64,000 nt of DNA, from assembly GCA_964035545.1 (NCBI GenBank), contig OZ037768.1, positions 16,785,875 through 16,849,874 of the forward strand, in the 5' to 3' direction. This document shows positions 7,189-53,378 of this stretch, in pieces. The notes under the pieces are model-generated. The model was not told the origin of the DNA. It saw nothing but the letters and a program-made list of their open reading frames with translations, and searched no databases. The first letter of the stretch is position 1; each line of letters begins with the position of its first letter. The translations under genes and the position numbers were made by a program. This DNA comes from Bugula neritina (lineage: Eukaryota; Animalia; Bryozoa).

Positions 7189-9884
<2,696 letters not shown>

Positions 9885-10103
9885 CTCTTACCACAATTTG
9901 CAAGCCAAGCCTTCAACACATGAAAATAAACGTAGTGGTAGTGGTAGTAAAACAGTTATCTTACCATTTTATAAAAATATAATGAGATGATAACTTCTAA
10001 GTTTTTGGTTTTAACGTCACATCCGTTCTTGTCTAAAACATTGACAAACTAATATAGTAATTTTATTTCAACTTTTACATTAAAATTAAATTAAAATATT
10101 GAT

Positions 10104-11494: not shown

Positions 11495-12642
11495 ACAGTA
11501 GTAGTACTATTACTAATACTACTGGTACTAGTAGTATTACTACTAGTAGTTGTCCTTAGGTTTGGGCCTTGTACTTGTAGATGTAGATGTAAATACCTGC
11601 CCTCGGTCTTATAGTTGTACTTCTACTGAAAGTTGAAGTTATACTTGAAGTTCACACTAGACTAGTTTCACTTTTTAAACTTTAAGTTAAAGTTAATCAC
11701 TATGAGTATGAATATTCTCTCAGTATCAGTTAAACTGAAAATTAATCATTATAAGTTCATCATCATTAGGATTATGTGAAACTGAATCTTCAAATATTAA
11801 AAATAGATATCATAATCAATGTTAATTCATCATAATGACAAGCCTAAAGTGTTCATTATGATCATCATTATCATTATGATAATAATAATCACAATTTTAT
11901 TGATTATAACTTATGACTATGATTATCATAAAGATAATCCTAATCATAATGATTATTTTGTTGTAATTGGGTACTATTATGTTCAACCTTTTTTTTATCA
12001 AATTTAATAAATATTTTAAATTAACCTATAGTAAAGACAAATGTAGTGATTATTTCATTAATTATATCGAGTTTGTTATTTACTTCTTTATGAAATATTG
12101 ATAATAAAATAAAAATCAGTAATAAAACCATTATAATACTAATTATAATGATACTATTACTTTTTTTACAAATAACTATTAGTAATACTATTACTTTTAG
12201 TAGCCTATTAATAGTATTTCCAAGACCGGTGTGCTGTCTACTAAATATGTAAAACTGTTATTAGAACCGCCTCTTGTGTAAATCATATAGTAATGTTTAT
12301 ATGTTCACATTTTTAGACTGGGTTGCTAATTCAACACTGCTGGTATATTTGTAAGTGGTCGATATCTGGGATGATGCTAGTGGCATAAGTCATTTACCTT
12401 GTATACTGTCATCAGAATGGAAAGATAGTTATTAATAAAATTGATCATGTTATCGATCACTAAAACTGCATCTGTGAAAATAAAAGCAGACTACCTTCAG
12501 TGATAAAAATAGCGTCATTGGTTTGGGCTTGTTGCGTTACAGTATCTGAAGCATGTCAGTGTCACTGATATGTTTTAAATACAAGAAAAAGGTTGGAATG
12601 CTACTATTTCATTTTGTTTTTATAGGCCTATTAGAAGAAAAA

Positions 12643-14878
12643 ATGGCAACTGAAGAAGGCGATCTTTCTGATTTTGATATTCATCGAATTATGGAGGCTT
12701 TATCTTCTCGCCAATCAAAATGTGTAGCTTCTTGTGTGTTGAGCATAAAAATATTGTTGGCTGAAATACAACATCAGTTGCTCGAACTTATGGTTGAAGG
12801 CGGCATAACCGACAAAGCAACATCGCCTTCAAACAGTCCCACTGTTGATGATGTAATCCTTGACTACAAGACTATAGATCAGCTGTTGGAGGTAGTACAT
12901 TTATTCTAATATCTATTGCATTAATCTGTTATTAAACTGTTATAAATAATTTTGAATTTCTACTGCATAATTTTGTTGAAAGTTTTTGATCCATTCTTTA
13001 ATAAGATTTACTTGTCTTGCATTTTGTCTATTCAAGGAAATGAGGATTTTTGTTTAATATTTACATTGGTTGTACGTTTTCCATCAGGCTGAAGCAAAGC
13101 TTGAAGTTGATGAGGAAGATAGTTCCAGCTGCATACAGGATGCTGTAGTTACTGGAGCGACTGTACCAATAACAGGATCTCGAATCAAGTCCCCAAATCC
13201 TTACCCCTGTCCAGAATGCAAGCTTTTATTTTCTACTAAAAAGGCCCTTAGTAGGCACATTGTCGTTCATGACAGCTGTAAGGGAGAAAAGCTAGATTTA
13301 AATGAGTCCACTAATGATATAGTTGACAATGTAGAGCAAGGTGTCAACAGTGAAAATGAATTGAAGTCCGAGTCAACAGATAGTAGTACTGCCAAAACCA
13401 ATCCATTGCGAATAAAGCTCGTATTATCAAAATCGAGCCCAAGAGTGGCCTGTCAGATATGCGGTGTTGAAACTTTAAAGCAGCATATGCCTCGGCACAT
13501 GCGTAAACACACAGGTGTGAAGCCGTTTACCTGTGGTGAGTGTGGCACATCGTTTTCTAGGAAAGATAAACTGAAAGAACATATAAGAAAGCATCAGCCT
13601 GATTATAAAACTGCTCCAGCATCTAAGGATAAGAGAGTCAATGAGACTAAGGTACTGAAATGCCGAAAGTGTGACTTCTCAACTGAAGATAAAGAGGCAA
13701 TGAAAAAGCACCGCAAAACTCATCCAACAAAAAAGACCTTCAGGTAAAAAATTGAACTCTGCTCATTTTCATTTTATTCATACTCAATGGGTTTTTGTAG
13801 AAAAATTTATGCAGTATTTAGAGGTTGCAGTTGTATTTGTTCGTTGCTTCTGCATTATTCATTAACAAATGCAGTTTAATGTCTAAACCTACTGAATAGA
13901 GAATCGCTGAAACTTGATTCAATTATTGACTCATAATCGATATTATGGATTTGTCATGTTTCAGATGTGAGGAATGTGATAGGGAATTCAACTGCTCCAG
14001 TCACTTTGAACAGCACAATATTAAACATCGCAATGAAAAGCCGTACATGTGTGATATGTGTGGCGTATCGTTTTCAAGAGAACCTAATTTAGCTCGACAC
14101 ATACGCTCTCACGTTACTCCAGCCCCCTACCAGTAAGTTTCAATTACTTAATAAACCCTAAGCCAGTTTTCTAATTATTTTTTCATAAATTGTATTCATT
14201 TTTCACACTAATTGGAATTTTTCAGCTCTTTGCATACCAATATACTTTGAGCCTATTTATAGAATACTTGAACCTTTATATGGAGTTTATTACTTTACTC
14301 ATTTTAGTTGTAAGTTCTGCAACAAGCCATATCACAGAAACAATGAGCTGATTGTACATGAACGTACGCACACTGGTGAGAAACCTTATATCTGTGAAGT
14401 GTGTGGGAATGGTTACGCCTCCACTAAGTACCTCAAGCGTCACTTATTCACACACACTGGTCTCAAACCTCACAAGTGTGACTTGTGTGATCGTGCATTT
14501 GCAAGACCTGAAAATATGAAGGCTCACCGAAAGCTTCATGAGAAACCATCTAATCGTTTGTCTTTAACTCAAGATGCAGTTGCATCCGCCTTTCGATCCG
14601 TCTCTCAAATGGACACCCAAAATTCTGATGATGTCATAGATGCTATAACGTCCACCCAAGTACAATCAAGCATGTACCAGTTTTCTACTGCCTCAAGCGC
14701 AACTACTGCAACACCCACTTCAACTCTTAGTGCAACAGACAAAACTCAGGCATTAGATAGTGATGTTGAGGAGTACCAGTTTAAATCTGACTCCTCACAC
14801 CCCTCAACTATAGCAGTTTCCCGTGATACGTTGACTTGTGACAATAACACAACTCCTTCCTTAATAGATTCATTTTAA
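12643..14878 (+). CDS. C2H2 zinc-finger protein, ~547 aa, 9 fingers
   Basis: Exons 12643-12891, 13088-13743, 13965-14132, 14308-14878 (1644 nt, in frame); nine CxxC..H..H units with TGVKPF/TGEKPY/TGLKPH linkers; S/T-rich C-terminus. Possible small UTR exon 12317-12350. Confidence 0.92.
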
Positions 14879-26700: not shown

Positions 26701-29700
26701 GAGAAAACCTGCCACCACTAACGCATTACTACAGTGTTGAAAGGTGGGCAATGAGTAGGTGCATGGTATGGAAGGTTAGTTATTTTAATAAACGTTGCAT
26801 ATACAGAGATGTTAGTTTAGGTATAGAGTTGAGTATATAGAGAGGTTGATTGAGTTCTCACGCTCTGGTGGTTTTTGCAGAGAGAAGTGTTTGAAGATAT
26901 GCAAATGGCCGTGTAGACCTCACGGTGAAGGACGCAGACCATCTTTCAGCCGATCCATGGATGGATTAGACCGGCAGGATCAGGTGACGGCAGTGGTCAG
27001 CAGGTGTGTGCTAAATATTGGTATTAGTAGGATGGTTGAGTCTCTAGTATAGCAATCTTGATCTCTACACTATTATATCATACGTTAGATAATTGTGATA
27101 ACCCTGCAGGGGGGAGCAAGCTATCATTTCAGTCACGAGAGTAATGCTCTCACAGAGCTAATTACAGTTTGTGATAGATTAAAGGGAATGTCAGTGCCAT
27201 AGTTTAAGTGTATCAATAAAATACTAGCTAAACAGCTAGAAGCTGTTGTTATTCATGTAATATATTTTATATAATATATAATATATATATTATATATAAC
27301 ATATAATATATATAACATATAATATATATAAAAGACGTATGGTAAAAATATGATGAATTTTCTAGCTTATACCATTTGTTCTGGTTTAACACTTTTCATG
27401 AGTATTCTGTTGTGTTGACTCAAACATCACATTCAAGTTTACATTTGATTTTCTCACAGCTTAGAAAAAGAGGGGTGCTTTGAAAAGGCCACTGCCATTT
27501 CACTCTTCCACGGGCGGATAGACGACGCCCTCAATATATTGAACAGGGGGGCCGAATATGGTGAGAAAGACTAAACATACCTTAGAAATACTTGCCTGAA
27601 GTGTTTTTTTATTGAATTATTACAGTCTTTTGTCAGTGTAGTGTGTAATGTACGCAAGTATTCAATTAAGGAGAAGTTTCAAATGACAGAAAAGTAGTTA
27701 ATACTTAGCAAAACTTACTAGTACCTAATCATTGTAGATTTTCTGTTGAACAAGCACAGCGGATAATACTATTTCAATCAATTATATTTCTCTTTGCTTT
27801 TGCTTTCAGCTGTTATTTACTGCGTTCTAAAGTAGATAATTTCATTCAAATGTTGCATTCCAAAACTGCTAATATCTTTTAATCATTTGTGTTATTTAAA
27901 TTGTAAAACTGGATAATGCATAGTTGAGTAGATCCTGCAAAGTCTTCTTCCCGTCTAACAATACTTTTCTACAGCTCATGTGTTGGGTGTTGTAATTAGT
28001 TTGGTTTTATGCTCTAATTTTATAGCAAGCACACATGGCCTGGGTAGCGGCATCAACCTCAGTATTGTGGCCATGGCCCTTGCCGGCATCAACACCGCCA
28101 ACAACGCCCTCTGGCTGTCCAAGTGTAGAGAGCTCTATAATAAGATTGACAATCCGTATCTTAGGGCCACGTTTGCGTTTCTCACCTGTGGCACAAACTA
28201 CAAACAAATAATTGTAGGTCTTCAATATCTATACCTAAAATTACTCTTGAATTAAAATTCTATTTGATTTGTTGACTGTCTGCATGTGAAACATAAACAT
28301 GCATTAGGTGGTATGCAGATGGTATAATTATGCTCTTGCCAAGCATATCATTATAATAATGCACTGCGCCTCCTCCCATTTATTATTGCCGAAACTCATC
28401 CTCCAGTTTGTGTTTTAGTAAGTTTTAGTAGACTGCTTAATATGTATACTAGATTCTCTTTTCAGTCAGCTAATTTTATTTTTAATTTTTCTTTGGAAGG
28501 AAAAATTTTATAGTGACAAAAAGTTATTATTGCAATATGTTGTTACCAACTGGCCAGCATGCTATATAACGTATATGTAATGTAATATGTTGTTTTGTCA
28601 GTCCAAATCCGACATCTCCATAGCTGACAAAGTTGCATTCGCCTGTCTCTTCCTGCCCGACAATGAACTGAAGGCTTACTTCAAAGATTTAGAAAATGAA
28701 GTCATAGAATCTGGAGATTTATCTGGGGTGCTAGTTACTGGTAAGCATAGGCAGTGATAGTTTATACAGGAGTTGTCTCACTTTTTATTTTGTTCACCAA
28801 GTTTTATTGCTAATATACTTAGTCCTGACTATTCACAGAGTGATTACAGTTGTTGCATAAGTATATTTTAATTGTATCAAAGATGAATTTGATTCTACAT
28901 ATTACACATGCACACACACACGCACGCAAGCACACACACACAGACACACACCACACACACACACACACAGACACACACACAGACACACACCACACACCGC
29001 ACACACACCGCACACACACCGCACACACACCGCACACAGAGACACACCGCACACACACCACACACACACACACCACACCGCACACACACACCGCACACAC
29101 ACCGCACACAGACACACACCGCACACACACACACACACACACACACCGCACACACACACACACACACCGCACACACACCGCACGCACACCGCACACACAC
29201 CGCACACAGACACACACCGCACACACACACACACACACACACCGCACACACACACACACACGCACCACACACACGCACCATATATCTTATTTTACAAGAT
29301 TTGAATGGCTAAACGCATTGAGAGACAGCTGTTTGCCTTCGGACAAAACTTTTGTTTATTGAAAAATGATCATTCAATACTTTTGGGTCGCTTATAAGAA
29401 ATGCTAACACTAGCTGTAGCTGTATAATATTAAAATAACATATTCTTCTATATTTCTGACAGGGTTGGACTACGCTGGTGTAAATTTGTTGCAGACGTAT
29501 ATAGATAATACAGGAGACATACAGACAGCCGCTCTTATTTTGATTCGCTCATTTCCCAGTAGGATACAAAATGACGAAAGAGTGGAGAATTGGATAGAGC
29601 AGTGAGTCTGTCACTTTGCTGGCTGTTGTAATGCTTTTGCTGAACTTTCTAAAACCATCTTTTTCACATAATTTTTGCTACATTTTCTCTGCTTCAGTTG

Positions 29701-37586: not shown

Positions 37587-40500
37587 ATGTCACAAGCCTT
37601 CATTCCTCTTTATTTTCTCTGCCTTTTCTGCATTCATGTGGCAGCTTCAACCACATCAGGTAAGTTAACAATCTAATTGTATTCAAATGCTAAAAACATG
37701 TAAAATTTGCCAGTAAAAAATAGGTTGAAAATCAATTACTTTTCTTTAATCTTGTTAAAGAGCTGGAACAAATAAAGCTAGTCAAATGTTTGCTGAGTTA
37801 GATGTGACCTAAAAATTTAATGGGAACATTTAATGATATTAAAAATAAATGACATTCGGTAGGTGTGTCTTAGGTGTCTTTAATGGATTATTTCTAATTA
37901 AATTAAGTTGTAAGAGTGGAGGGGAGCTGAGTAGAACATGATATAACGTAGGACATAAATTTAAACCAAATTTTTCTATCCAAACTAAACTGTTATTGAA
38001 ATTTAACAGCACAAACTTCCGGGAATATGGGGTTTTAACTCATGGTTACCCAACACCTTGAATTATTACTTTTTTAAATTCTCATCGTACAATTTGTCTT
38101 TTGTCTAGAGCTAGCCATAAAATGACAGCTAGTTGAGAATCATTCATATTATAGAATAAATTAAGAAACATTCTTCAAACGTGATAATTTTGTTGCAATA
38201 CGTTTTATAGCATTTAAAACCAATATTATCCTCTAATTTACTAATTACTCATAATTCAAGTTTTATTTTTCACACCTTGCTCAACTACACAGATGTAATC
38301 CTGTGACATTGAGATTCTATGTATGTTTTATTACATTACCGTAGTTTATCTAACAAGTTCATTGCATTTAGCCACTGTCCGTGCACAGCATGTTTTGTAT
38401 TTTAGTTTAAGCAGTAAGCAAACCAGTTTGTCACTCTCAGATCAAATTAACAAGCATGATAAATAGTCAAACTGAAACTTCATTGCATGATAACTAACTT
38501 TATAAACTAGTCATTGCTATTTTGGTTGTTGCAATTATTATTTAATTTGTAACTGGAGAAGCATAATGTTGAACTTGTTAACCTATGCAAACTTACAGTA
38601 AAAAAATAATTTGGATGTTTATAGCTATATGATTTAAAGGGTGTCCGGTAAAAATGACACAAATTGCAAAGTAAGTAAAAATGGCACATTTTCAATATCA
38701 GAGTTTGGGTTGGGGGTGGGTGTTTGAGTTTGGGGCTTAAAGGTTGAGGGTTTGAGTTTGGGGTTTGGTAAAATTTAACATCAGTGTGCCATTTTTTCCT
38801 ACTTTTCCATTTATGCCCTTATTACCTAAGATCAATTTAAAGCTTCTATGTTGGCATATTGAATCAGTACCAATCGATGGGTAGAAAGCTGCACCATGTA
38901 GTTATACATTTAGGAACAGTAGTGAAGAAATTGAGACAGCCTATAAGTTCTTCGATTTTCTATTAAATTTTTGTTTGGGGGTGGGTTGAACATAACTCCT
39001 TATGCTAAATTTCTAGTTTAGAACACATGGCTTTTCTCAATTTCTCCATTACTGTACCTACCTCTAATTATATATTGGCTTAATGGGTGCTCCTCGAAAT
39101 TGCTATCATATGTTGCTTTTCCTGACAAGAGGCAATCAAAAGCATACACGTGCTGTTACCATGTAAAGTAAGGTTAGATGGCATGGAAGCCTTTAAAACT
39201 TGGTATATATGTAGCATAACTCTGTCTTAGGCTATTAAACACAGCTTTCTTGCAGTTTAACTCACTAACTTAAAAACTGAAGTTTTAAATCAGCTGCTGC
39301 AATTTTTATTTGTTATTCTTCTGACAAGTGTGTTGACCCACAAAGTAATCTGTTGTTATAACATATTTCCATGATATAGGCTTTCAACTCATTGAAAAAA
39401 TTGATGCGGCTGAAAATTAGCAAATTTCTCCATCAACATAAATATAGGGATATAACTTATGCTATACTTTGCTGCTGCTGAAACTTCTGCATTACACCAA
39501 CAGCTATTACAGCTATTATCATACATTTATTATGTAGATATTAAACAGCTATACTTTTGTCGTTAACATGGTATGTTAGCCAAGATCACTGAAAGCCTGT
39601 TCTATAATAGCATAAGTGAATGTGGGGTAACGCCAACACCAGCCTAGGTTTTGGAATAATTATGTTTACCACAAGCTATAGAGACTCCCCCAACCAAATA
39701 ACCAGATTAATTAATGATCTCTTATTCAAAATTAGTTTAGCTACAGTGTAATTAACAGCACATTTTGCTGCTTACATACTGATAATAGTTGCTTTATTGT
39801 AACTAAACCATAAATCTAGACCTAGCTAATAATATTCCAGATAATTGCTAAACTGATCAAGTTTCTCATATAATAAGAGTGTACCCTGATAGCTTTGTAC
39901 TATTTCTAGCTTTTCCCTGCCAGTGACTTTTTATTGCAGTTGGTGCACAACCCAACCCTTTTATTCTCAATTTGAAGAGCCATTAGGCTAAGGTCAAGGT
40001 GTTTTCCTTGCATGCTCTCGAAATTTGCTATAAGCAGCATCAAGTTAGAGGTGCAACTGAGTGCAGCAGTTTGGGGTTCCAAGCACGGGCTTTCCATGTA
40101 CCGATCTCAGATCGATCTCACTGAGATCGATCTGAGAAATGTGCTCAGATCGATCGTTTTTCCATGAGAGTGTCAGATCGATCTCGCGAAGTTGCCTCCT
40201 CTTAAATGAAGGATATTTTAAAAGTATATTTTGTTTACCTATTTGAGTGATTAAAGCTACTACTGTTGAAAACAAGATGGTCCTAGTCTAAAATTTAATC
40301 CCAGCTATAAACTATACGCAGCAAAGCTTTCAGTGTATGGTAATTTGGCCAATTTAAAATAATTAATTTTAATTTTTTAGCTTGACAGCTTATATAAAAT
40401 TAATGGCTGTCTTGCAAATTATTAATAAACTTACAGAACTGTTAGGCTTAAAATTACAAAGAAAATAGCTAATGAAACCAAGTTTTAATAGTCATTTAAA

Positions 40501-43500
40501 TTCAATTTAAATTCTCCCATTTTTTTACCTTCTACTGCATATAATTGAGTTTTCTTAATCATTGTACTGAAAGTCAAAGTTTTGGCATCTGAATAGGTGG
40601 CTATCATAATTATTAAATACTTTGCTTAGCAATTATCAATAAGTTATCATATTTTATTAGCAGACAACATTGTAGCGCGCAGTCTTTTTCTACTTCTCAG
40701 ATCGATCTGGCGTCTTTCCATGGTCTTATTGACATGAGATCGATCTGAGTTCGAGCTCCACAGACCGACCAGCTCAGATCGACGGAGATCGATCTTTGGC
40801 GTCTTTCCATGGATCGATCTCGCTGAGATCGATCTGAGATCGGTACATGGAAAGCCGGTGAAGTCCCAACTTAAACCCAACCCCAAACTACTGCACTCAG
40901 AAACCCTCAACTGGAGGCTGCTTATAACAACTTTACATGCTCTTAACTTGCCACATTCAACTTTACTTCTTACATTGTATTCAGTAACAATTATGTAATA
41001 GAAAACAAATAATTATAATGCAGAAACTTTGAACAATATAATAATATATAAGTGTCTACTGATTCTTTAGATGGAATTCATGCCTCCTGTAGATTTCGGA
41101 ATGTTGATAGTTGTAACTATTGGAATAAAGTGTCATATCATCTGTTTTCTTAAGCTTATGGCTGTGTGGATAGCATAGATATACTGTTGTGTATAGCTCA
41201 GTTTAATGCTGCTTGGGGCAAGACAGCAGTGTATAGTACAAGGTTTATTGGAAAAGCTTGCTAGGAAATTTGTTAACCCTCCCCCTCCCTCTTATTTAAA
41301 ATTATAGTTTGAATAATTAGCATGAATTTGACTCCAGAACTGTATAGTTTTGTTAACAACAATATTTTAGCTGCTAACAGAAAACGCTGTTTGTTTGATG
41401 AGACATATGAAAATGAGATTAACTTGTAAATGTTATTAAAAACAGGTTCTAAAGTAATCTCTATGTAGCCATGTCAAAATAACTCACAAGTACTTATTAT
41501 ATGTTGATTGTCTTATTTGTGGGAAATACCGTTGACATCAATTGCAGAAGTATTAATGATTGAGTAGCATACAGTAGGAATATGTATTCATCTCACTTTG
41601 GATTCAGTACAGAAAAGATGGCTATGTAATCTGATACAATGTTTAAACTGATGCACATAATTATGACATACTACCTGTTTGATAAACTTCAGCAATCTTC
41701 TGACTTTTATGGTACTCAAGATTAAGCTACTGGGATGAAATTAACTAATCTATGTAAAAGAGCTACTCACAATTTTCATATTTGGTCACAGTGTTTTAGC
41801 TAGAGATATCTATTGTTTTGGCATTTGGCATTTTTGGCAGCTCTTGACAAGTTAGTGCCAACAATCCTCTGCACGGAGAAAATAATCAAGGCTTTGTTAG
41901 ATGTGTCATGATAGACAACCAACAGCTATCCACTTTTTGCCAATTTTGAGATACAAATTAGGAATTGTGTTCTCCCAAATCAAGCCTCGAGATAGCTTGA
42001 GACTAAATTGAAATCTCCAACTAACGACTACAAGATTTAGTAAAGCAATTCAATGAATTGTATCTTTACTTTAGTGAGTAAGACTGAAAACTCATGGTGA
42101 TTCTGATTTACTTTCGAGTCCTAAAGTCCAACGAATCTTCAATCAACTGCAGAAAATTACATAAACATATTTTTCAATTAAAATGCATAGCAGATGTGTC
42201 ATCAAAAGATTTGCTTTAACTCTGTTAATTAATTTCATTATTGATGCTTTTCCAGCGTTATACTTATTTTCTAATTGTTTACAAACTTACAATTTCATAT
42301 AACATATGACATTATTACCTGTGCCATTTTTACCGGACACCATATTTTGGATATTAATTTGGTCAAATTAACGTTTTCACAATGTAGTCTAGAAGCAATT
42401 TATTCTCATTTTTTCCAAAAAGAACTTTTGAGTTTGCATGCTCCATCTATCAATACACAACTCCCAGTAACTGAGTGAGTGTTTCAGGAGAAATGAATTT
42501 TCTCTTACACAAGTTTATTTTAGCTGTGATTTGCTTGCATGTGTGCATGATCTTTTGCTTTAACTGACATGGTTTGGTTGCAGCTGACCAAGGCATGCTA
42601 GGTTCACCTGGAATGGCTAACAACATTTCCCTGTACTCCACAACAAACCTCACCACTGCGCACACATCTTCCCCTCTTTCTGTCAGTAGAACAGAGTCCT
42701 CACTGACAAAATATGTGGGCACAACTTCTAATGTAACAGGAAGTGATGTCACACCTTCTGCCATTGTAACAGCATCTGCGGGGTCCAGTTTATCATCGAT
42801 ATTAAACTCAACTTCACAGGGTTCAGTAATTACTACTGCAGCAGCTCTTCCTACAAACGAATCAAGTCAAACAGTGGATAGTCTAAACTCTACAATTACC
42901 GATCCTGTGACATCAATTGTAGGATCTAGTTCATCAGGGATTGGAACAGGATCAAACACTGCTTCATCCGTTGTCGAGACCACCACCTCGGTACATAGTT
43001 CTGATATACCCTCCTCAAGCCTACCGATGAGCACAACTGCCAACACTTCTGTAACAGATGCAGGAAATAGCACAACTACTAATTCCTTTGTAACAGGTAC
43101 AGGAGAAAGCACAACTGCCAACACTTCTGTAACAGATGCAGGAAATAGCGAAACTACTAGTTCCTCTGTAACAGGTACAGGAGAGAGCACAACTACTAAC
43201 ACCTCTGTGCCAGATACAGGAGAGAGCACAACTATTAATTTCTCTGTAACAGGTACAGGAGAGAGCACAACTGCCAACACTTCTGTAACAGATGCAGGAA
43301 ATAGCAAAACTACTAGTTCCTCTGTAACAGGTACAGGAGAGAGCACAACTACTAACACCTCTGTGCCAGATACAGGAGAGAGCACAACTACTAATTTCTC
43401 TGTAACAGGTACAGGAGAGAGCACAACTGCCAACACTTCTGTAACAGATGCAGGAAATAGCAAAACTACTAGTTCCTCTGTAACAGATGCAGGAAATAGC

Positions 43501-46500
43501 GAAACTACTAGTTCCTCTGTAACAGGTACAGGAGAGAGCACAACTGCTGACACTTCTGTGCCAGATACAGAAAATAGCACAACTACTAATTCCTCTGTAA
43601 CAGGTACAGGAGAGAGCACAACTGCTAATTCATCTGTAACCGATACAGGAGAGAGCACAACTACTAACACCTCTGTAACAGGTATAGTAGAAAATAAAAC
43701 TACACTTTTGAATACCATCTCTCACATAACAAGTGTACCACTATAGTAGCAGCCCTATTACCTTTAATCCTTGCAGGATAAAGAGTCGTTTTAACATAAT
43801 TTAAACTGGTACATAAGCAAATCATGTTTTAGTTTAAAAATTTGTGAACATATGATTCTTAAACACAGTTAATCTTAGAATGCGTTTCTTGAGTGAATAC
43901 TACAAGAATATCTTAAACAGAAAGAATACTTAATATATTGAGATGTTTTTGATATATTTTTAAGTGCTTAAATTCATTTTTAAATAAAACTTTAACCATT
44001 ATAACAAGTAAAGGCGAGAACATTTGACTTTGGTATAGTTTGGGTTTAAACACTGTGAGTGAGTGCAAACACATGTTCATGTCAGTTTGATATCTAATCA
44101 GTCGTTTTTATCTCTTGTCACTTTCTATGTGTGACACGCTGCTTATCAGAAATTATTTAGCATCATCAACTTCAACAGTTTTTACACAAACATAATAAGC
44201 ATAATTTCGCTATTCTAGATAATATTGTATTGTAGCTCCTGATCCCTGCGTATCCCAGCCATGTGAAAATAGCGGAACGTGCCGACCTAATGGCACAGGA
44301 TACACTTGCTCTTGCGACTCCGACTGGACAGGATTTAACTGTTCAACTGGTCAGTTCCTTTTTCTAGATGCACTACTTGAAACTGGGCTACGTAATGATG
44401 CTATTGTTAGCCTAGCTAAACTTCTAAACGCTTGGTTCTGGCCGATGAAATAAACTTAAGCAACACATTTTGTCATTATTTTTTATAAAAATACAATATG
44501 CAATAGTATGCTTAAGCCTATAATTATATTATTTTCTGTGTTAGACAACTGTAGGCCTACTAGTAAAACTACTATTAGTTTAACACTAGGACTAGCAAAG
44601 TTTAATTATACCTGTAACATTTAGGTCCAATGTATAACTATCTTTTTATAGTAATTAAAATATAAAACAAGCATATTGCATAAACATTAAAACGGCTCAT
44701 AGAATTTCTTACTAGATCATTATAATAACATAAATAAATAAACTACTATTGCCAATAGCACTCACTAAAAAGGTATGTACTATATGCATCACTTTATATT
44801 ATGCAGTACCACCAGCACTTCCTCGGGTTTCATTCAATTTCAAAACACTAAAACAATTTATATCTTATAAAGGACATCATTATGTATATGTAGGCCATAA
44901 CAATAATCTAATTATGTATCGTTTGTATGGGTTTAATGACCTTGGCCTCAACTCTGTAGTTGTTATAATTCATAGACATACAGCTTCTAGTTGCTATATT
45001 TTAGTATAATGCATGTACTCTTCAGTCTTTTGTAAATGTTTCAGATGTAGATGAGTGTGCAGAGTCTTTGTCCAAATGCGACAATCAGACCAGTACATGT
45101 GAAAACAAAGATGGCGGATACTCATGCGTTTGCAATATGGGCTACATGAAAGACATAAAAACTGAGAATTGTGTTGGTTAGTGTGAAACTAAATGTATCC
45201 TAATAGCTGTGTGCTAATTGGTGAAATATAATAACTAATATGATTCATGCATTAATAAATAAATACAACTAACTGAAATGATAGTGTTTTCAGGGACATA
45301 GTGTAGAAATGATGGCTGTTTAAGCTAATATTTTGAGACATAAGGAAGTATTATGACGAGATTACTCAAAGCTGGTGTAGCATGGTCTGTGTGATGTTTC
45401 TGTGGTGTGGTTATAAAAGAGAAACTTTATAATTCATAGCCTGCGTCAGCCATAATGCAATCATAGAATGGTACTTTTACACTCATTATTATGCAGTTAT
45501 TTTTTCCATTTAGACATTAACGAGTGTGCTCTAGGCATGAGCAAGTGCGACTCAAGTAAGGGAGAAATGTGCAACAACACAATTGGCAGTTTCCAGTGTT
45601 TGTGTGATGAGGCAAGAGACTATGTAGAAAGAGACAATCAATGCATTCGAAGTAAGTTATGGTGGATAATAATAATGGTAGATACATTCAGTAAGTAATG
45701 GTAGATAAGCAAGTAAGTAAGTAGATTTAAGTAAGTTATGGTATATATGAGTAAGTAATGGTAGATGAGTAAATGAGTGATAGATGAGCAAGTATGGCAG
45801 ATAAGTAAAAAATGGTTGCTAACTTTAAAAAATATGAGTTATGATTATGCAAAATCGTTAAAACATTCACTTCACCAAAGGTTTTATTTTTTAAACACTG
45901 CATGTCACCTTTAAATTTTTATTCTGCTATAATAAATTTTACAGCAATCTTTCATAGATAATATGCTGTTTATTTTTAAACTTCGGTAAGTCTATTGAAA
46001 GTAGACTTCAGGCTAAAACAAATGATCGAATACTGTAGCCTTTTGATGATGCGAACTGTGCTCTTGAAAGTCTAGAGCAGCCATCTTGCATTTGAAAAAA
46101 AAGCAAATAATTGATGACTTGGACAGCACTTCTGTGGAGAGCTTTACACTTTTGACCTCAAGACTCGAATATTATTTATTTAATCCATTTTTTAAGATTA
46201 CTTAAACTTGCTGCATAAAATTTCAAATTCATTAAGAAGTAGCGGTCACTTAGTCTTTTGATATGAAAATACATTTCAGTTATCAAAGAAAAGTATGAGT
46301 TTAAAGTTTGGAATGACGCTGTGTACAGAGCAGAATATGATGATCCAAATTCTCAAGAATACAAAGACTTTGTGAGGAATATTACAGAGAATGTAAGTAT
46401 AATAAATTTACAGGAAGTACAGATATACAAGACAAAAAGATACACCAAGTTTCTCTTATGTGAAGCTAAGAACTGACTGTAAAATGCATGATACAATAAT

Positions 46501-47913
46501 ATTTCATAACTCAGCTTAAAAATAGTTATAAAAACTAATTTGTTGCAATTATTCAGGTATTTTGGTTGCTGATCTATCCATTTAATTCAGTACTAATGTA
46601 TATTGATCACACTGGCTTTATATAACAAGTTTCTTTCACCAGTCTGCAGTAGGAAGTCATAGGTTTTTACAGTTATGAGCAAAGTATTTTTAATTATTAG
46701 TTTAAACATCAGGTGGAAGACACTGTACTACTTTGCTTGGTGGGTGGATAATTCCCGTATAACTCTCTGGAACCCAGACATGACATAAAAACAGATTTTT
46801 ACATTTACCTCATTTTAAAGCATCAAAGTGCGCCAAAAATATTATCGCTGATTTAAAAATATTATTTTTATAAGCTTTTATTAATCATAACGCTGGTACG
46901 TACTTTAAAGTGCACCATAAATTCAAGTTTTAGTAATACCACATTATTCATATATGACATGGAAAGCCTAAAATATGTACTCATGTTTAAACTATAGGAT
47001 AGGATAAACATAAAACTGGAATAATATAGCTGTTACTATATGCTATTAATTATCATGCTTTGATAGTACACATATGCTATGTGTAGTCTGTAGATAAAAG
47101 TGATTGGAAATTTTTTGACACAATATACAATTGTTGCGCAATTGGACTTCTTATGAGAAGACAACTTCACAAGCCACTTGCATCTATGCCCAAAATGTTT
47201 AGAAATAGGAATTTAAATAAATGCTTATAATCCCTATAAGAAAGTAGCACCAGTGGTTGATGTCTTTCACTTAGTTTTATATGGTTAAAAAATTTGTCAG
47301 TTGAATTACTGTGATGCTACTATTACTGTCTATATTTGAAAGGATTAATTTGAAGAACAATAATCCGGGGTAACCTTCGCCGCACGCAACAACTTTGTTC
47401 CAGTAGAAACTCAGTTTATTGAGCAAAATGTATAATCTGCGATTCTTGATAAATACAAGGCAAACTCACTCTACTCAGACACTAAACATTTCATTTAACT
47501 CAAAAGATATTCGTGTCAATTGTTGTTAACAGTTTAAAATTTTCTTAGTCCACATATTTCTGCAAATTGCAAATTGAACCTTGTTGAGCTGAAAACACTG
47601 TTTTTAGGTCATTAAATTTATTTCAATATTTGTTTTCAGGCAACCACGATGTTGAACAGTACAAACAATAATACCATTGATAATTTCAAGGTAGTTAGTC
47701 TAAGGTAAGCATAGTGGTCTTATTTGTAAAAGTTGTGTCGCAAAATGACTTATGAAAACAACTCTAATGTTTTATTTTTCAACTGTAGCCTAGAGAATAA
47801 AATATATTAAAAAATTCGTTGTTTACAATACTGGGACACTGTCTATATATCAAGTGCTGAAATTTTGGTTTATTTGCCATTTGCCATGCTATAGGTAGTA
47901 CTGATGTGTGTAA

Positions 47914-47958
<45 letters not shown>

Positions 47959-48333
47959 GACATGCGAGGGCATTTGTTTTAGAAAGCGTTACATGAGCAT
48001 TCTATAATCCATACAATATGCTTACCAGCTTTTTTTAAATATCATTAATCCGCCAGCTTTTCAGCTTTTTACTACTTAAATAGTACCATGTAATATATTC
48101 TTTAGTAGATTTAAACATTTTATCTGAAGAGTGTATATTTTAACATACATGAAACTATTAGTAATAAAATGTTTTATCAATTTTAACTGTGTCATTTCAA
48201 TTCTATTTTATGATATGCTCTGTTTTAAACATTGAGCTCTTTTAAGCAGCGCACTATATCTCACAGTCATATATATATATATACATATGTATATATATAT
48301 ATGTATATATATATATGTATATATATATATGTA

Positions 48334-48405
<72 letters not shown>

Positions 48406-51400
48406 GATTGGTTTTATATATATACACACACGGTGCACCTATACGATGCTATGACAATACGTTATGAGAATACCAGCGTTATTGTTTTTATTTATGATTA
48501 ACAATAACATCACATGCTATGGCAATGCATTGTAGGAATGGCAGTGTTATTGCTACTGTCACTTTTGAAAGAAGCTCTGCAATAACTCTAAACACTTCAA
48601 GCTTGCCTAACGCCAATGAGTTGCGTAAGTTACAGTTCTACACAACACAGATGTTTGTACTTTTATTAGTTCATGAGATTTATTGCTTACGCATGCAAAT
48701 GTTAAATATTGAATATATTTTCTCTGTAGGTTTTATAGCATAAAAATCCAACTATGATTCATTTTGAGATGAATTCAGTTTTTTTTGTACTAAATAAATT
48801 TCTATGTAAAAAATGACCAATTATGTAGTCTCTATACTCTACTCATTTAGTTTCATATTTATGTTGAATTTAAGCTGCTGTTTACTGGCAGAGGTTCTGT
48901 TACAGTTCTCAGTTCCTCTGAGCTCTGTGCATCTCACAAATGTGATTCTCGATCCACGACATGTGAGGGAGTTCCTGCAGCAAAGTACTACGTCTGCAAA
49001 TGCAAAGACAATTTTGAAACCATTCCTAATGACTTCCGCAGGTGTAAAGGTTGGTTGATGAAACATTCATTGTATACTGTATAGACAAACAAGATTGGTG
49101 CTACCACTAGTTGTAGCTGTTTCTCAACTTCTCTTATAATCACATGAAATGATTAACAGCATACACAAGATACTATAGTAATGAATAGTTAATACTATCT
49201 TCCATAGCGCATAAATCTAATGGATGTTAATAAAAAGTTTAACTATAAAATCAGTTTTAAATGTTTGGTAAAAATATTTTCTGTTCTAATATTTTGCTAA
49301 TATTTAAATCAATGCTGGAATCATTTTCAAATCAAAAAGCTTTGTATTTTCTAAAATTCTTATGAATTTTAAAACTATTTTGTCAAATTACACATAGTAG
49401 AAGCAGTGTAATCTGCTTGTGAAACATTTGAATCATTATGAGAACTCGTAGCAAGCAAGTAAGCTTAGAATTCGCAAGTAGTCTGCTGATTTTTTCTGCT
49501 GCTTGCTTATAGTTAAAATTATTTTTATCATTTGTGTTCAAAGTAAGCGATTTTTACAGTTTTAAAGGTTAGTAGTTAGAAATATAATTCTTATGCATTA
49601 TTTTACAGCAATAGATGAATGCACTGTACCTGGAAAACTGTGTCCGGATGGTAGACGATGCGTTGAAGAATATGGCATTTTAATATGTAAAGGTAGGTCC
49701 TGGTCTGCTATGATGTATTGTGACTAGTAAACAGGCAGCTAAGACTTTATTCATGTCTTTTTTTATAAAAAATACATACATTTTTCAAAATTCATTTACC
49801 ATTTTAATTGGCTCAAAATAAAATATATTACTTTCTTAGTTTGTTGGTTTGTGTATGAAATTATAATGCAAAGCTGATTTTCTTTAGTGATGTTAATGTG
49901 AGAGAGTTTGTAGATAGGTTATTGGACTCATGTAACAGTCGAGTTTGCGGAAATCATGGAAAGTGTTCAACATTTAGAAATGGAAGTGTAGCTTGCAGGT
50001 GAGAAAATTCAATGTCAACATTTCTTTGAAACTGAATGAAAGATTACTTATTTAGCATTTTGTAGTTTAGTAAATTATTAAATTTTTACAATGCTGAGTA
50101 ACAATGTGTCTAAAGTTCAAACCACAAGTCTATAAGGTAATGTAGATTTATGTTATTACGTTATTATTATGTAATTTACAGCTGTACCGAGGGCTACTCT
50201 GGCACACAATGTGATGTTAAAATTGTCAAGAAATCTGAACGCGATGGTATGTAGGCAAAAACTTTGCTAAAATCCTTAACACTGAAAAATTGTATAGAAA
50301 TTGATCTAGCGAATGCTATATAAGCTATAGTATGGTGCTTAGAGTTGTCCCCCATGCAATCCAGTTTGTAAATGCCATTAAGACAAAAGGTTTTCAATTT
50401 TTAAAAAAATTTAAGCTTTATTTGTTTTAAAGATAGCAAAAGTTTACGTTGAAGCATCTTGACTTAATATTAAGGTAACTGGAAAAGCTCAATACCAGTT
50501 AGTGTTTGTAATCATATTACATAATAATGTATGACCTTCAGACATCATAAAAAATATTATCAACTTATGTTTGCCTGACTGCTGAATATGGGAATAAAAT
50601 CTTGTAAGTTTCATAGACACACTAGACATATACCGAGTGTATAAGGAGGAACTCATATAAAAGATATTTCTTTTCATTTTGCAAATTTTTCACAATTATT
50701 TGATTTCATGTTTTGAAAGCAACATTTTTTAAGTCATGTTAAAGTTTGATATGAGCACATGACATGCACTGTAAAACAGACAACAAATAATCTTTATATA
50801 ACAATAGTGAGTAATAATTTGTTTATTTTACAAAGTATATAAAATCTGGGAAAGTGAACATGCTGATATAAAATTATTGACATTAGGCGATAAGTAAATA
50901 ATTACATTGGCTGCCAGCTCACTTTTACATGGTATACTTGGTAGTAATTATTTGGCATGGCAACTTGTGTATAATTATACCCTATTAAATTACCATAATT
51001 TCCATAACTTCAGGATGCACATGTGTTAAGTTTCTTTCTGAATCAATGCTATTACCCTAATATAATATAGCTCGTCCAGTAGTACTAATACCATGAGTCT
51101 GATTGCAAATGCAAATACACTCGTTATATAGGATTTCTGTCAACTTCGGGTTCTACTTCAACACGTCTTATGCCAGTTATGCTGTAACATTCTCATTTAC
51201 TAATCCATAGTAATTACGTGAGCTCAACATGGTAGCATCTACTTTTACTGCATCTTCTACTCGTACAGGAATGTGGAGGTGGCTTTCAACATTGTAAGAA
51301 GTAGTTGACCTTGATTGAATATATAGCGCTGATGATAGACATATTATTGCTGACCTTTCATTCTGACATCATAAATAACTAAAACATTTTTGGCTAGTGG

Positions 51401-53378
51401 ACAGGAGCTAACCAACATGCTACGAGCATTTTTTCTTACTAAACATATGAGAATGTCTCATCGTTTAACTTTAGATCTGGAGAAAATCTTGATTGGCGTT
51501 GGTGTGGGACTAGGAACATTAGCCTTCTTCTGTGCAATCGCCCTTATCATCACTTGCTGTGGGTAAGCTCTTATAATCAACTGTTGTACCATTGAGTTCT
51601 AGAGTCTAGACTTTGGTATTTTAAATATGCAGAGGTGAAATTTAATAATGTAAAATTGCCAAGAATATAGGCTGACTACATTGTGTAATGGTCTATCGCA
51701 TTGTGTGATGCTTTTTTACCGGACTCAACAGGTTTATATTACTGTGAACAATGTTTCATAACTACAACAAGTAAGATAGCACAGTTACCTCAATAATTAT
51801 CCACACATTATGACATAGCAGACAGTATCTTATGTACAAAACTCTTCCCACTAACCACAGCTGTGAAACAAATACATAGCTTTCTAAGTGAATTTTGACT
51901 AAAGTAGAAACTTTTTAAGATCTAAGCTCTAAATTTGTACCTACGAGTCAAAGTTCTGTGCAAGTAGCCATTAGTTATAAGCACTTGATAGCCATTTGTA
52001 TTATATTGTGTAACGATATTACAGTTCTCCGCATTATTGATATCTGACTTAGTAATAGAACTTAATGGCAATTATTGAACGCGTGTAACTCTGCAATGGG
52101 GTATTTTAGAGATAGAGGTAAAGGGTCTAACTCCTCATATTCTCCAGTGAAAAAGACAAGCATGCAATATTTTAATGATGATGTGACAATTGATAACTGG
52201 GAGCCTTCCTTGCCTCGACCTAAGATTAAACCAGGAGCTTTCGACTCAACACATGGCGACGGCATAGAAATGAGAGAGAAGAGAGGAAACACCGATGGTG
52301 ACAAAGTAAGTCATGTGATTCAAAGTACTCAGTAGCTGCCCAAGACTGCTTGCAAGTGTTGATACATCATTTAATTATCTCCACTCTTCTCAGCTTGCGG
52401 CAGCGCGTAGCAATACTCAAACTAATATGTTCTAGATGCTGACTTAGCTAAATTCAACATGTAAACTGTAACAAGAACAGTTAATTGCTGTAGGAATACA
52501 GAACTGGATCACAAATTTATATACAATACATACAGTGATAGGGGTCATTTTACGTAATTTAGTACACATGCTTTTTCTTAATTATTCAGCTACTTTTGAT
52601 TGCGACTGTTATGGTTTTTTCATAACTGTCCGCAACCCAAATTAGCTAAATAAATAGGAAAAAACATGGGAAATCAAGCAAAATTAGGAAGAACCATGAT
52701 TATTTAGATGCATTTATTGATATTTTACTAGTTTTGGGCAAAAACCCATAAATTGTGAAAAATAGCTAAAAACTGGAAATTTCCAGTGTGTACTAAATTA
52801 AGTAAAATGACCCATAGACCATCATATATAATATAATATATAATAATAAATGACCACATATAACATACAAGGATAAATCACCATAATTCTATCAAGGTAT
52901 ATAATATATGGGCATCTATCACTATAATATATAGTGGTATATCACTGCGTATGTAGTATATGTGGCGATATATTATATATACAATATAATATACAAGTTC
53001 TAGATCACTATGTTTATAAAATATTATATACAATGGTAAATGACCATATGTAACATATACTGGTAGATCACATTATATTACATATAATATACAGTGATGA
53101 ATAACCAATATAATACGAAGTGCTACTGTAGTTCACATATAGTATACAGTGCTAGGTTGGCTCGTATGCTGGCTGTTTATGCACACTATACATATTTATA
53201 GACCATTGGTTAACTTTACTCCATGTTGTAACTGGTATTACAGGAAGGCCGACTGGGTGCTACAGGCAGAGAAAACCCAGCCTTCATACCGGAAGCTGAT
53301 TACGACATCGGCAATGGCCGAAATGGTAGACTAGTAGCCAATGGCAAACCTGAGACAGGAGATTATGTGTATTTCTAG
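37587..53378 (+). CDS. Type-I transmembrane mucin, HEG1/MUC13-like: signal peptide, Ser/Thr repeat stalk, EGF, 2x cbEGF, SEA, EGF, truncated EGF, EGF, TM, cytoplasmic tail; ~872 aa
   Basis: Exons 37587-37659, 42584-43681, 44236-44349, 45045-45176, 45514-45651, 46280-46392, 47640-47704, 48536-48624, 48906-49049, 49609-49692, 49914-49998, 50182-50246, 51475-51562, 52110-52305, 53244-53378 (2619 nt, in frame). Signal [21 protein letters not shown]; [28 protein letters not shown]; cbEGF DVDEC and DINEC; [16 protein letters not shown]...LRNGSVIA; [27 protein letters not shown]; tail ends [11 protein letters not shown]...GDYVYF*. Confidence 0.88.
38639..38833. mobile_element. Short element with GTAAAAATGGCACA/TGTGCCATTTTT inverted motifs around G/T-rich GGGTTTGAG repeats (Helentron/HINE-like organisation); matching inverted end at 42321-42341
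   Basis: GGTGTCCGGTAAAAATGACAC at 38639 and GTGCCATTTTTACCGGACACC at ~42321 are near-perfect reverse complements; internal telomere-like G-runs at 38701-38770. Confidence 0.45.
38911..39060. mobile_element. MITE with ~30-40-bp imperfect TIRs
   Basis: TAGGAACAGTAGTGAAGAAATTGAGACAGCC vs GGCTTTTCTCAATTTCTCCATTACTGTACCTA; second copy at ~35900-36045. Confidence 0.7.
40029..40926. mobile_element. Small TA-flanked MITE split by insertion of a second element (outer element of a nested pair)
   Basis: TATAAGCAGCATCAAGTTAGAGG...CTGAGTGCAGCAGTTTGGGGTT (40029-40078) pairs with AACCCCAAACTACTGCACTCAG...CCTCAACTGGAGGCTGCTTATA (40879-40926). Confidence 0.75.
40084..40860. mobile_element. 777-bp non-autonomous DNA transposon with CAC...GTG termini, 3-bp TSD (AAG) and subterminal AGATCGATCT palindromes
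   Basis: TIR CACGGGCTTTCCATGTACCGATCTCAGATCGATCTCA / TGAGATCGATCTGAGATCGGTACATGGAAAGCCGGTG (1 mismatch); AAG at 40081-40083 and 40861-40863; ~10 GATCGATC-type motifs. Confidence 0.88.
43030..43681 (+). repeat. Coding VNTR: ~16.7 copies of a 39-bp (13-aa, [13 protein letters not shown]-type) unit with a 156-bp higher-order period
   Basis: Visible in DNA and in ORF 42574-43746; rich in Ser/Thr and N-x-S/T sequons. Confidence 0.97.
45652..45810. repeat. Degenerate GTAAGTAATGGTAGAT tandem array starting at a 5' splice site
   Basis: At least five GTAAGT hexamers within ~110 nt downstream of the exon ending at 45651. Confidence 0.8.
47917..48425. repeat. Two (TA)n microsatellites (~47917-47953 and ~48270-48402)
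   Basis: Directly visible; source of the poly-(IY) spurious ORFs. Confidence 0.95.
52542..52813. mobile_element. 272-bp MITE with GGG...CCC termini and 4-bp TSD ATAG (Sola2-like end structure)
   Basis: TIR GGGTCATTTTACGTAATTTAGTACACA / TGTGTACTAAATTAAGTAAAATGACCC (1 mismatch); ATAG at 52538-52541 and 52814-52817. Confidence 0.85.

Follow-up and report, generated by a model that had tools for sequence, protein, structure and literature searches.

HEG1 (zebrafish heart of glass; human Q9ULI3; KRIT1 FERM complex PDB 3U7D) is a type I mucin-like receptor with a Ser/Thr stalk. The literature regards it as an orphan receptor of the endothelium and heart of vertebrates, and the invertebrate work covered in reviews concerns KRIT1, CCM2, and CCM3 only. 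The vertebrate ectodomain follows the order EGF, calcium-binding EGF (cbEGF), SEA-like stretch, Cys-rich EGF, and membrane span (PMC5374711). The gene described here was found in Bugula neritina (Bryozoa), on contig OZ037768.1, in a 64,000-nucleotide (nt) window (contig positions 16,785,875 to 16,849,874), which is the whole stretch of DNA analyzed; unless another contig is named, coordinates are positions in this window. It occupies positions 37587–53378 on the + strand and encodes a mucin-like membrane receptor. The reading towards which the analysis leans is that the product is an 869-residue type I membrane glycoprotein of a single-copy gene and a bryozoan homologue, probably an orthologue, of HEG1, with a terminal Tyr-Phe in the tail that would dock KRIT1.

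The cytoplasmic tail of HEG1 has 111 residues, is 76% identical between human and zebrafish, and contains the Rasip1 binding site TDVYYSPTS at 1327–1335 (PMC4733052). The alignment in Supplementary Figure 4 (human, rodent, and zebrafish HEG1) has a span ending in IAL(I)VT-CC, followed by RKNKND, SPYAEYPKNPRSQEWGREAIEMHEN, the Rasip1 site, and YNPSFISDESRRRDYF (PMC5374711). Human HEG1 contains N1367-P-S-F1370 and has the C-terminus S1375-R-R-R-D-Y-F1381; the Tyr-Phe supplies 64% of the surface buried in KRIT1, removal of the Tyr-Phe lowers HEG1 binding >20-fold, and the KRIT1 substitutions L717A/L721A reduce HEG1 affinity >100-fold (PMC3461514). The human motifs that the first-pass annotation of this window had cited (IALIVTCC, EAIEMHEN, YNPSFI, and terminal RRDYF) were confirmed in these sources (PMC5374711, PMC3461514).

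The stretch at 37587–53378 is a genuine 14-exon gene. Exon boundaries were set from splice sites and reading phase only, and searches were run per exon rather than with the joined spliced protein as query. The predicted gene comprises 2610 nt over 14 exons (869 codons and a stop), and all junctions are phase-consistent. In the feature list and below, P0002 is KAF6031071.1 (B. neritina) and P0004 is a Watersipora subatra RefSeq protein. The exons are as follows.

37587–37659, + strand: exon 1, ATG at 37587, hydrophobic core, signal peptide; phase 1 out
42584–43681, + strand: exon 2, Ser/Thr-rich mucin stalk, 1098 nt; phase 1-1
44236–44349, + strand: exon 3, EGF, not calcium-binding; Pfam EGF 30.7 bits, above cut-off
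45045–45176, + strand: exon 4, cbEGF (DVDEC...); Pfam EGF_CA 44.8 bits, above cut-off; phase 1-1
45514–45651, + strand: exon 5, second cbEGF (DINEC...); Pfam EGF_CA 37.2 bits, above cut-off; phase 1-1
46280–46448, + strand: exon 6, SEA-like module, N-terminal part
48536–48624, + strand: exon 7, SEA-like module, C-terminal part, with GSVIATV
48906–49049, + strand: exon 8, EGF-like, after SEA; 81% identity to P0002 residues 11–51 (tblastn)
49609–49692, + strand: exon 9, small EGF-like (IDEC...), fast-evolving
49914–49998, + strand: exon 10, membrane-proximal EGF, first half; 93% identity to P0002 residues 80–107 (tblastn)
50182–50246, + strand: exon 11, membrane-proximal EGF, second half, and short stalk
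51475–51562, + strand: exon 12, membrane span; phase 1 in, 2 out; 100% identity to P0002 residues 130–159
52110–52305, + strand: exon 13, tail part 1, including DGIEMREK
53244–53378, + strand: exon 14, tail part 2, including ENPAFI; ends GDYVYF; stop TAG at 53376–53378

The module order is thus signal peptide, Ser/Thr stalk, EGF, two cbEGFs, SEA-like, three EGF-like, span, and tail, and the ectodomain modules lie on symmetrical phase 1-1 exons, as is usual for such modules. The span exon ends in IALIITCC, and the tail is 110 residues long and was found once in the genome. The signal peptide, Ser/Thr stalk, EGF/cbEGFs, IALIITCC span, tail motifs, and DYVYF end were all located on the + strand where the first-pass annotation had placed them. 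Exons 8–14 correspond to the annotated protein KAF6031071.1 with every junction matching (tblastn), and the last exon, as first proposed, is backed by this independent annotation and by purifying selection. Further upstream, exons 4 and 5 match P0004 residues 246–292 and 293–341, respectively (tblastn), and exon 2 can be aligned with the S/T part of its Watersipora counterpart. The stalk contains a tandem array (43029–43681) of 16.7 copies of a 39-nt (13-residue) unit. Exon 3 has the acceptor TTGTAG and the donor CTG|GTCAGT (phase 1-1). The donor of exon 1 is perfect (CAG|GTAAGT at 37659) and its phase fits the acceptor at 42584; the assignment of this exon is tentative, with no cross-species match. 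Confidence is lowest for two boundaries, the start of exon 2, also tentative, and the end of exon 6, where the donor AA|GTTTCT is non-consensus and the 3′ boundary is therefore tentative; an end at 46448 alone yields the phase 2 required by the next acceptor.

Relatives of the tail were searched with exon 13 in 1.84 billion proteins (HMMER, exhaustive). Apart from two spurious proteins, the relatives were of the bryozoan type only; ten were retrieved, nine of them (P0001–P0009) with the tail motif. The spurious matches P0010 and P0011 were rejected, one being a WD40 repeat protein and the other a repeat protein of low complexity. KAF6031071.1, deposited as 'hypothetical protein EB796_010619' of Bugula neritina, is 268 residues long (97% identity in this search); the assembly that encodes it is close to the window sequence but distinct from it. 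It is an orthologue with tail exons 96–97% identical and the same DYVYF end; its truncated model covers just the last 268 residues and is labelled 'hypothetical' or 'EGF-like domain-containing'. The full-length Watersipora subatra orthologue (677 residues) is colinear along its length, from the stalk down to the C-terminus, with the gene in the window, has tail exons 54–63% identical, ends in DYVYF, and is without the first non-calcium EGF. RefSeq names it 'protein HEG homolog 1-like', so the HEG name is already applied to this family by automated annotation. The expectation that automated annotation would call such a gene mucin-like was accordingly wrong: one orthologue carries the HEG name, and for B. 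neritina there is a truncated model entered as a 'hypothetical protein'.

A word-based search with the tail exon returned a near-identical open reading frame (ORF) fragment as the sole match, and over 7.6 kb, in introns as well as exons, the contigs bearing this fragment match the window at 87–90% identity. Other family matches were short ORF fragments from metagenome and Logan contigs, and the three-exon unit of span, tail part 1, and tail part 2 is complete on contigs L031, L034, and L035. The exon 13 family block reads DDVTI[DE]xWxPSLPRPxIxPG, followed by [IL]EMxE[RKN], and in the fragment P0009 the latter is exactly IEMHEN. In the alignment of the last exon (n = 6), the invariant residues are G, NPA, IP, ADYD, R, N, K, D, and the terminal VYF; the C-terminus is D[YF]VYF-stop in six of six sequences. 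Conservation of the tail motifs among orthologues, on which the first-pass annotation had made its claim depend, was thereby found.

A family fragment at L030:412–627 (Logan SRR25727943), contains DDIEMHEN, of which IEMHEN is the vertebrate HEG1 motif. It is nearer to that motif than any bryozoan sequence found, and its contig stops short of the last exon.

Codon changes were counted against the closest relative (L015). Over the 137 codons of span and tail, 20 changes were synonymous and 3 non-synonymous: all 4 in exon 12 were synonymous, exon 13 had 9 synonymous and 2 non-synonymous, and exon 14 had 7 synonymous and 1 non-synonymous, and the stop of the relative has not shifted. Given these 20 versus 3 changes, the kept stop, and flanking intron and 3′ DNA of 84–90% identity, the tail is coding and strongly constrained. 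In the 27 codons of exon 9, by comparison, no synonymous and 8 non-synonymous changes were counted, and positive selection may act on this part of the ectodomain. Judged from these codon counts, the ectodomain evolves fast in part and the span and tail are under strong purifying selection.

In the metagenome contig of the same relative, 39 nt (13 codons) of the last EGF exon are gone in frame (L015:790–830 versus window 50182–50222). The annotated B. neritina protein retains these 13 codons; the loss is either an assembly error or real, in which case half an EGF is missing through polymorphism or a difference between lineages.

The bryozoan and HEG1 tails have four motifs in common and in the same order, namely IALI[IV]TCC, IEMxE[NK], NP[SA]FI, and a free terminal Tyr-Phe. 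The comparison with HEG1 was made by eye. Chance is a poor, very unlikely explanation of four ordered motifs of 4–8 fixed residues each within about 130 residues, an estimate made after the motifs had been seen. The residues shared with HEG1 are also those fixed within each group, as would be expected under common descent. The likeness extends, again by eye, to the domain order (EGF, cbEGF, SEA-like, Cys-rich EGF, span) and to a basic juxtamembrane stretch after the span, which has a counterpart in the bryozoan gene. Like the bryozoan gene, HEG1 is single-copy and co-occurs with KRIT1, CCM2, and PDCD10. The bryozoan gene differs from HEG1 by one extra cbEGF and two extra EGF-like modules, and the bryozoan-type family has a 15-residue tail insertion not in HEG1. 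Taken together, these features suggest that the gene is probably a HEG1 homologue; orthology, and any physical binding, are predictions from the sequences compared.

All three partner genes, whose presence the first-pass annotation had proposed to check, were recovered by profile scans of the genome: KRIT1, CCM2 (CCM2_C, 35.8 bits), and PDCD10 (PDC10_C, 58.6 bits). The KRIT1 gene lies at about 32.746–32.755 Mb of G000:C1 (− strand). Its N-terminal region has NPCY and NPLF and a weak NUDIX_5 match; a search of the genome with the NUDIX_5 profile gave none at the default threshold, but the match emerged when the threshold was relaxed and when single exons were scanned with Pfam. Also present are ankyrin repeats, FERM_M, and KRIT1_FRMD8_FERM_C (64.6 bits). 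When the KRIT1 exons were searched against PDB, human KRIT1 was the sole match (E 2e-6, 0.004, and 0.22), and the alignment with E 2e-6 includes the F1 insertion peculiar to KRIT1, which makes up the HEG1 pocket. Human numbering was assigned by comparing the human line of the alignment with the residues named in PMC3461514, with the following result.

KRIT1 pocket residues kept in the bryozoan: Leu472, Gln473, Lys475, Asp486, Leu494
KRIT1 pocket residues changed in the bryozoan: His483 to Gln, Glu489 to Ser, Ile490 to Gln, Glu493 to Ala

The F3 exon aligns gap-free to human KRIT1 652–716. In the last exon, ASLICSLMKRLSDINIARAK-stop (ASLICSLMKRL), Leu then falls on positions 717 and 721, Ser on 720, and Arg on 724, in a register counted on from the gap-free F3 alignment and not taken from a tool alignment; this exon (20 residues) gave no PDB match when searched alone.

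A second copy of about 1.4 kb of the KRIT1 locus, 86–94% identical, lies on a different chromosome-scale contig (G000:C2:22518866–22520253; L012, L014, and L001). The partial duplicate holds the NPCY exon with one residue different, and the other KRIT1 exons are absent beside it.

A number of observations weigh against homology to HEG1 with docking of KRIT1, and they are considered here together with the explanations that they favor. The first group concerns the docking. The four pocket changes listed above and a fifth, Lys720 to Ser, alter the partner, and the tail itself ends in D-Y-V-Y-F instead of the human R-D-Y-F (RRRDYF), so that Arg-Arg-Arg-Asp is absent before the Tyr-Phe and Val-Tyr is extra. 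From these changes it could be argued that the gene is a true HEG1 homologue whose Tyr-Phe no longer engages, or never engaged, KRIT1 and whose tail uses other partners. This is considered somewhat unlikely. Of the surface buried in the human complex, 64% comes from the Tyr-Phe alone (PMC3461514), and Leu472, Leu494, Leu717, and Leu721 are kept. Moreover, the acidic patch of human KRIT1 (Asp486, Glu489, and Glu493) faces Arg1378 of the HEG1 basic run; bryozoan KRIT1 has lost two of these three acidic residues and the bryozoan tail is without the basic run. The two losses accompany each other and would fit co-variation of receptor and partner. The bryozoan tail may bind KRIT1, a reading that is put forward with reserve.

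The second group of contrary observations concerns the relationship to HEG1. The comparison by eye used machine-read supplement text that holds reading errors. The anchors are differently spaced: NPxF is ENPAFI, 30 residues from the end, in the bryozoan and YNPSFI, 11 residues from the end, in human, and the segment from IEM to NPxF has 18 and 49 residues, respectively. Between the tail anchors there are indels of 15, 31, and 19 residues relative to HEG1, and since these compensate each other, the equal total tail length (110 residues versus 108–111 in HEG1) is regarded as coincidental. A colinear counterpart of the Rasip1 site TDVYYSPTS was not found in the bryozoan tail; SSYSPV, close to the membrane, is confined to Bugula and has not been kept in Watersipora. 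Vertebrate HEG1 was not among the exon 13 matches in the 1.84 billion proteins. Word-based searches with the Watersipora tail and its C-terminal half, which cover proteins of 372–1185 residues and hence have zebrafish HEG1 (977) in range and human HEG1 (1381) out of range, returned the query itself only. In PDB, the HEG1 26-mer of 3U7D was matched neither by the last exon nor, at E up to 10, by a six-sequence profile of it. A SEA-like stretch with GSVIATV is present, but it scores 17.9 bits (18.9 bits at the equivalent position in Watersipora), below the Pfam cut-off of 26.4. A single-sequence AlphaFold model of the SEA region, with a predicted local distance difference test score (pLDDT) of 49, was too low for use. 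GSVIATV is placed where the self-cleavage of SEA, G|SVVV, occurs, the Watersipora orthologue has GSVIATLVV in the same place, and the cleavage position reads GSV in the bryozoan gene versus SNAVV in human HEG1.

Two further sets of matches were discarded. The PDB matches that the last exon did produce were rejected as chance (e.g., IPEADYD in phosphofructokinase), and ESM Atlas look-alikes of the Watersipora span and tail had scores of ≤0.77 (MUC1 fragments), below noise level. In the intron that splits the SEA-like module, long microsatellites of the (TA)n and (TATG/TATA)n type are found at 47860–47960 and 48230–48450.

A rival explanation is a lineage-specific SEA/EGF mucin unrelated to HEG1, in which the tail motifs are convergent, NPxF serves a Numb/Dab-type PTB adaptor, and V-Y-F is a class II PDZ ligand. 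The class II PDZ ligand pattern is hydrophobic-x-hydrophobic at a free C-terminus, and V at −2 and F at 0 match it, as a pattern match only. This explanation gains from the missing significant sequence link to vertebrate HEG1 in all searches run, the large differences in inter-motif length, and the absent Rasip1 site, and also from the fact that SEA, EGF, and a span are known together in several unrelated families (a weak EGF_Mua-3 match was obtained here). It has to account, however, for four motifs that keep their order and coincide with the best-conserved positions of each group, for the unusual span end IALI[IV]TCC and IEM.E, and for the EGF, cbEGF, SEA-like, EGF order in common with HEG1; RefSeq best-hit naming also points to HEG1, and the leucines of the KRIT1 pocket are kept. 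Convergence is for these reasons held to be unlikely. Since no search gave a significant HEG1 match, homology rests on the four short colinear motifs and the domain order, and the proposal of a HEG1/MUC13-family relative in the first-pass annotation stands on these two and has not gained a database match to vertebrate HEG1.

Descent from a common ancestor of HEG1 and MUC13, with co-orthology to both and a tail function that need not equal that of HEG1, is improbable: EGF, SEA, and EGF-EGF before the span resemble MUC13 (as generally described) as much as HEG1, and the tail is single-copy in the bryozoan genome, but the tail motifs open to comparison are those of HEG1. MUC13 and other SEA-EGF mucins have in common with the gene an S/T domain, an EGF-flanked SEA, a single span, and a short signaling tail.

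Elsewhere in the window, a multi-exon C2H2 zinc-finger gene lies upstream (12553–14878, + strand), and a large ORF-rich gene at 1833–4245 (− strand) was not assigned to a family. The G+C content at 8001–10000 is just 8.7%. An imperfect simple repeat of the (CA/TG)n type, about 500 bp long (28819–29362), gives rise to long artefactual ORFs on both strands.

If the gene is a HEG1 homologue that docks KRIT1, as preferred here, the following arrangement is predicted. The Ser/Thr stalk of the ectodomain would be heavily O-glycosylated. As in the human complex, the free C-terminal Tyr-Phe would insert between the F1 and F3 lobes of the animal's own KRIT1 FERM domain, in the hydrophobic groove found there, so as to anchor KRIT1 at the epithelial plasma membrane and bring CCM2 and PDCD10 with it, and NPAF(I) would be a second docking site, for a PTB-domain adaptor. 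Because bryozoans are without a heart, blood vessels, and endothelium, any HEG-KRIT1 role in them must be epithelial. With less assurance still than the binding itself, it is suggested that Tyr-Phe anchoring of the CCM complex by a HEG-type receptor predates the lophotrochozoan/deuterostome split and acts in plain epithelia. A description of an invertebrate HEG tail, or of its relation to KRIT1, was not found in the literature search, in which the HEG name was applied to an invertebrate only as a best-hit label, in a study of clam methylation.

Compared with the vertebrate system, the bryozoan gene together with a KRIT1 that has kept the pocket leucines would be a concrete case for a receptor arm of the CCM pathway older than blood vessels. 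The 'cardiovascular' HEG1-KRIT1 module would then be a co-opted ancient epithelial junction or mechanosensing device. The tail residues kept over the distance between bryozoans and vertebrates would be the essential ones, and it looks as if the Rasip1 site and the basic run were added later, in vertebrates.

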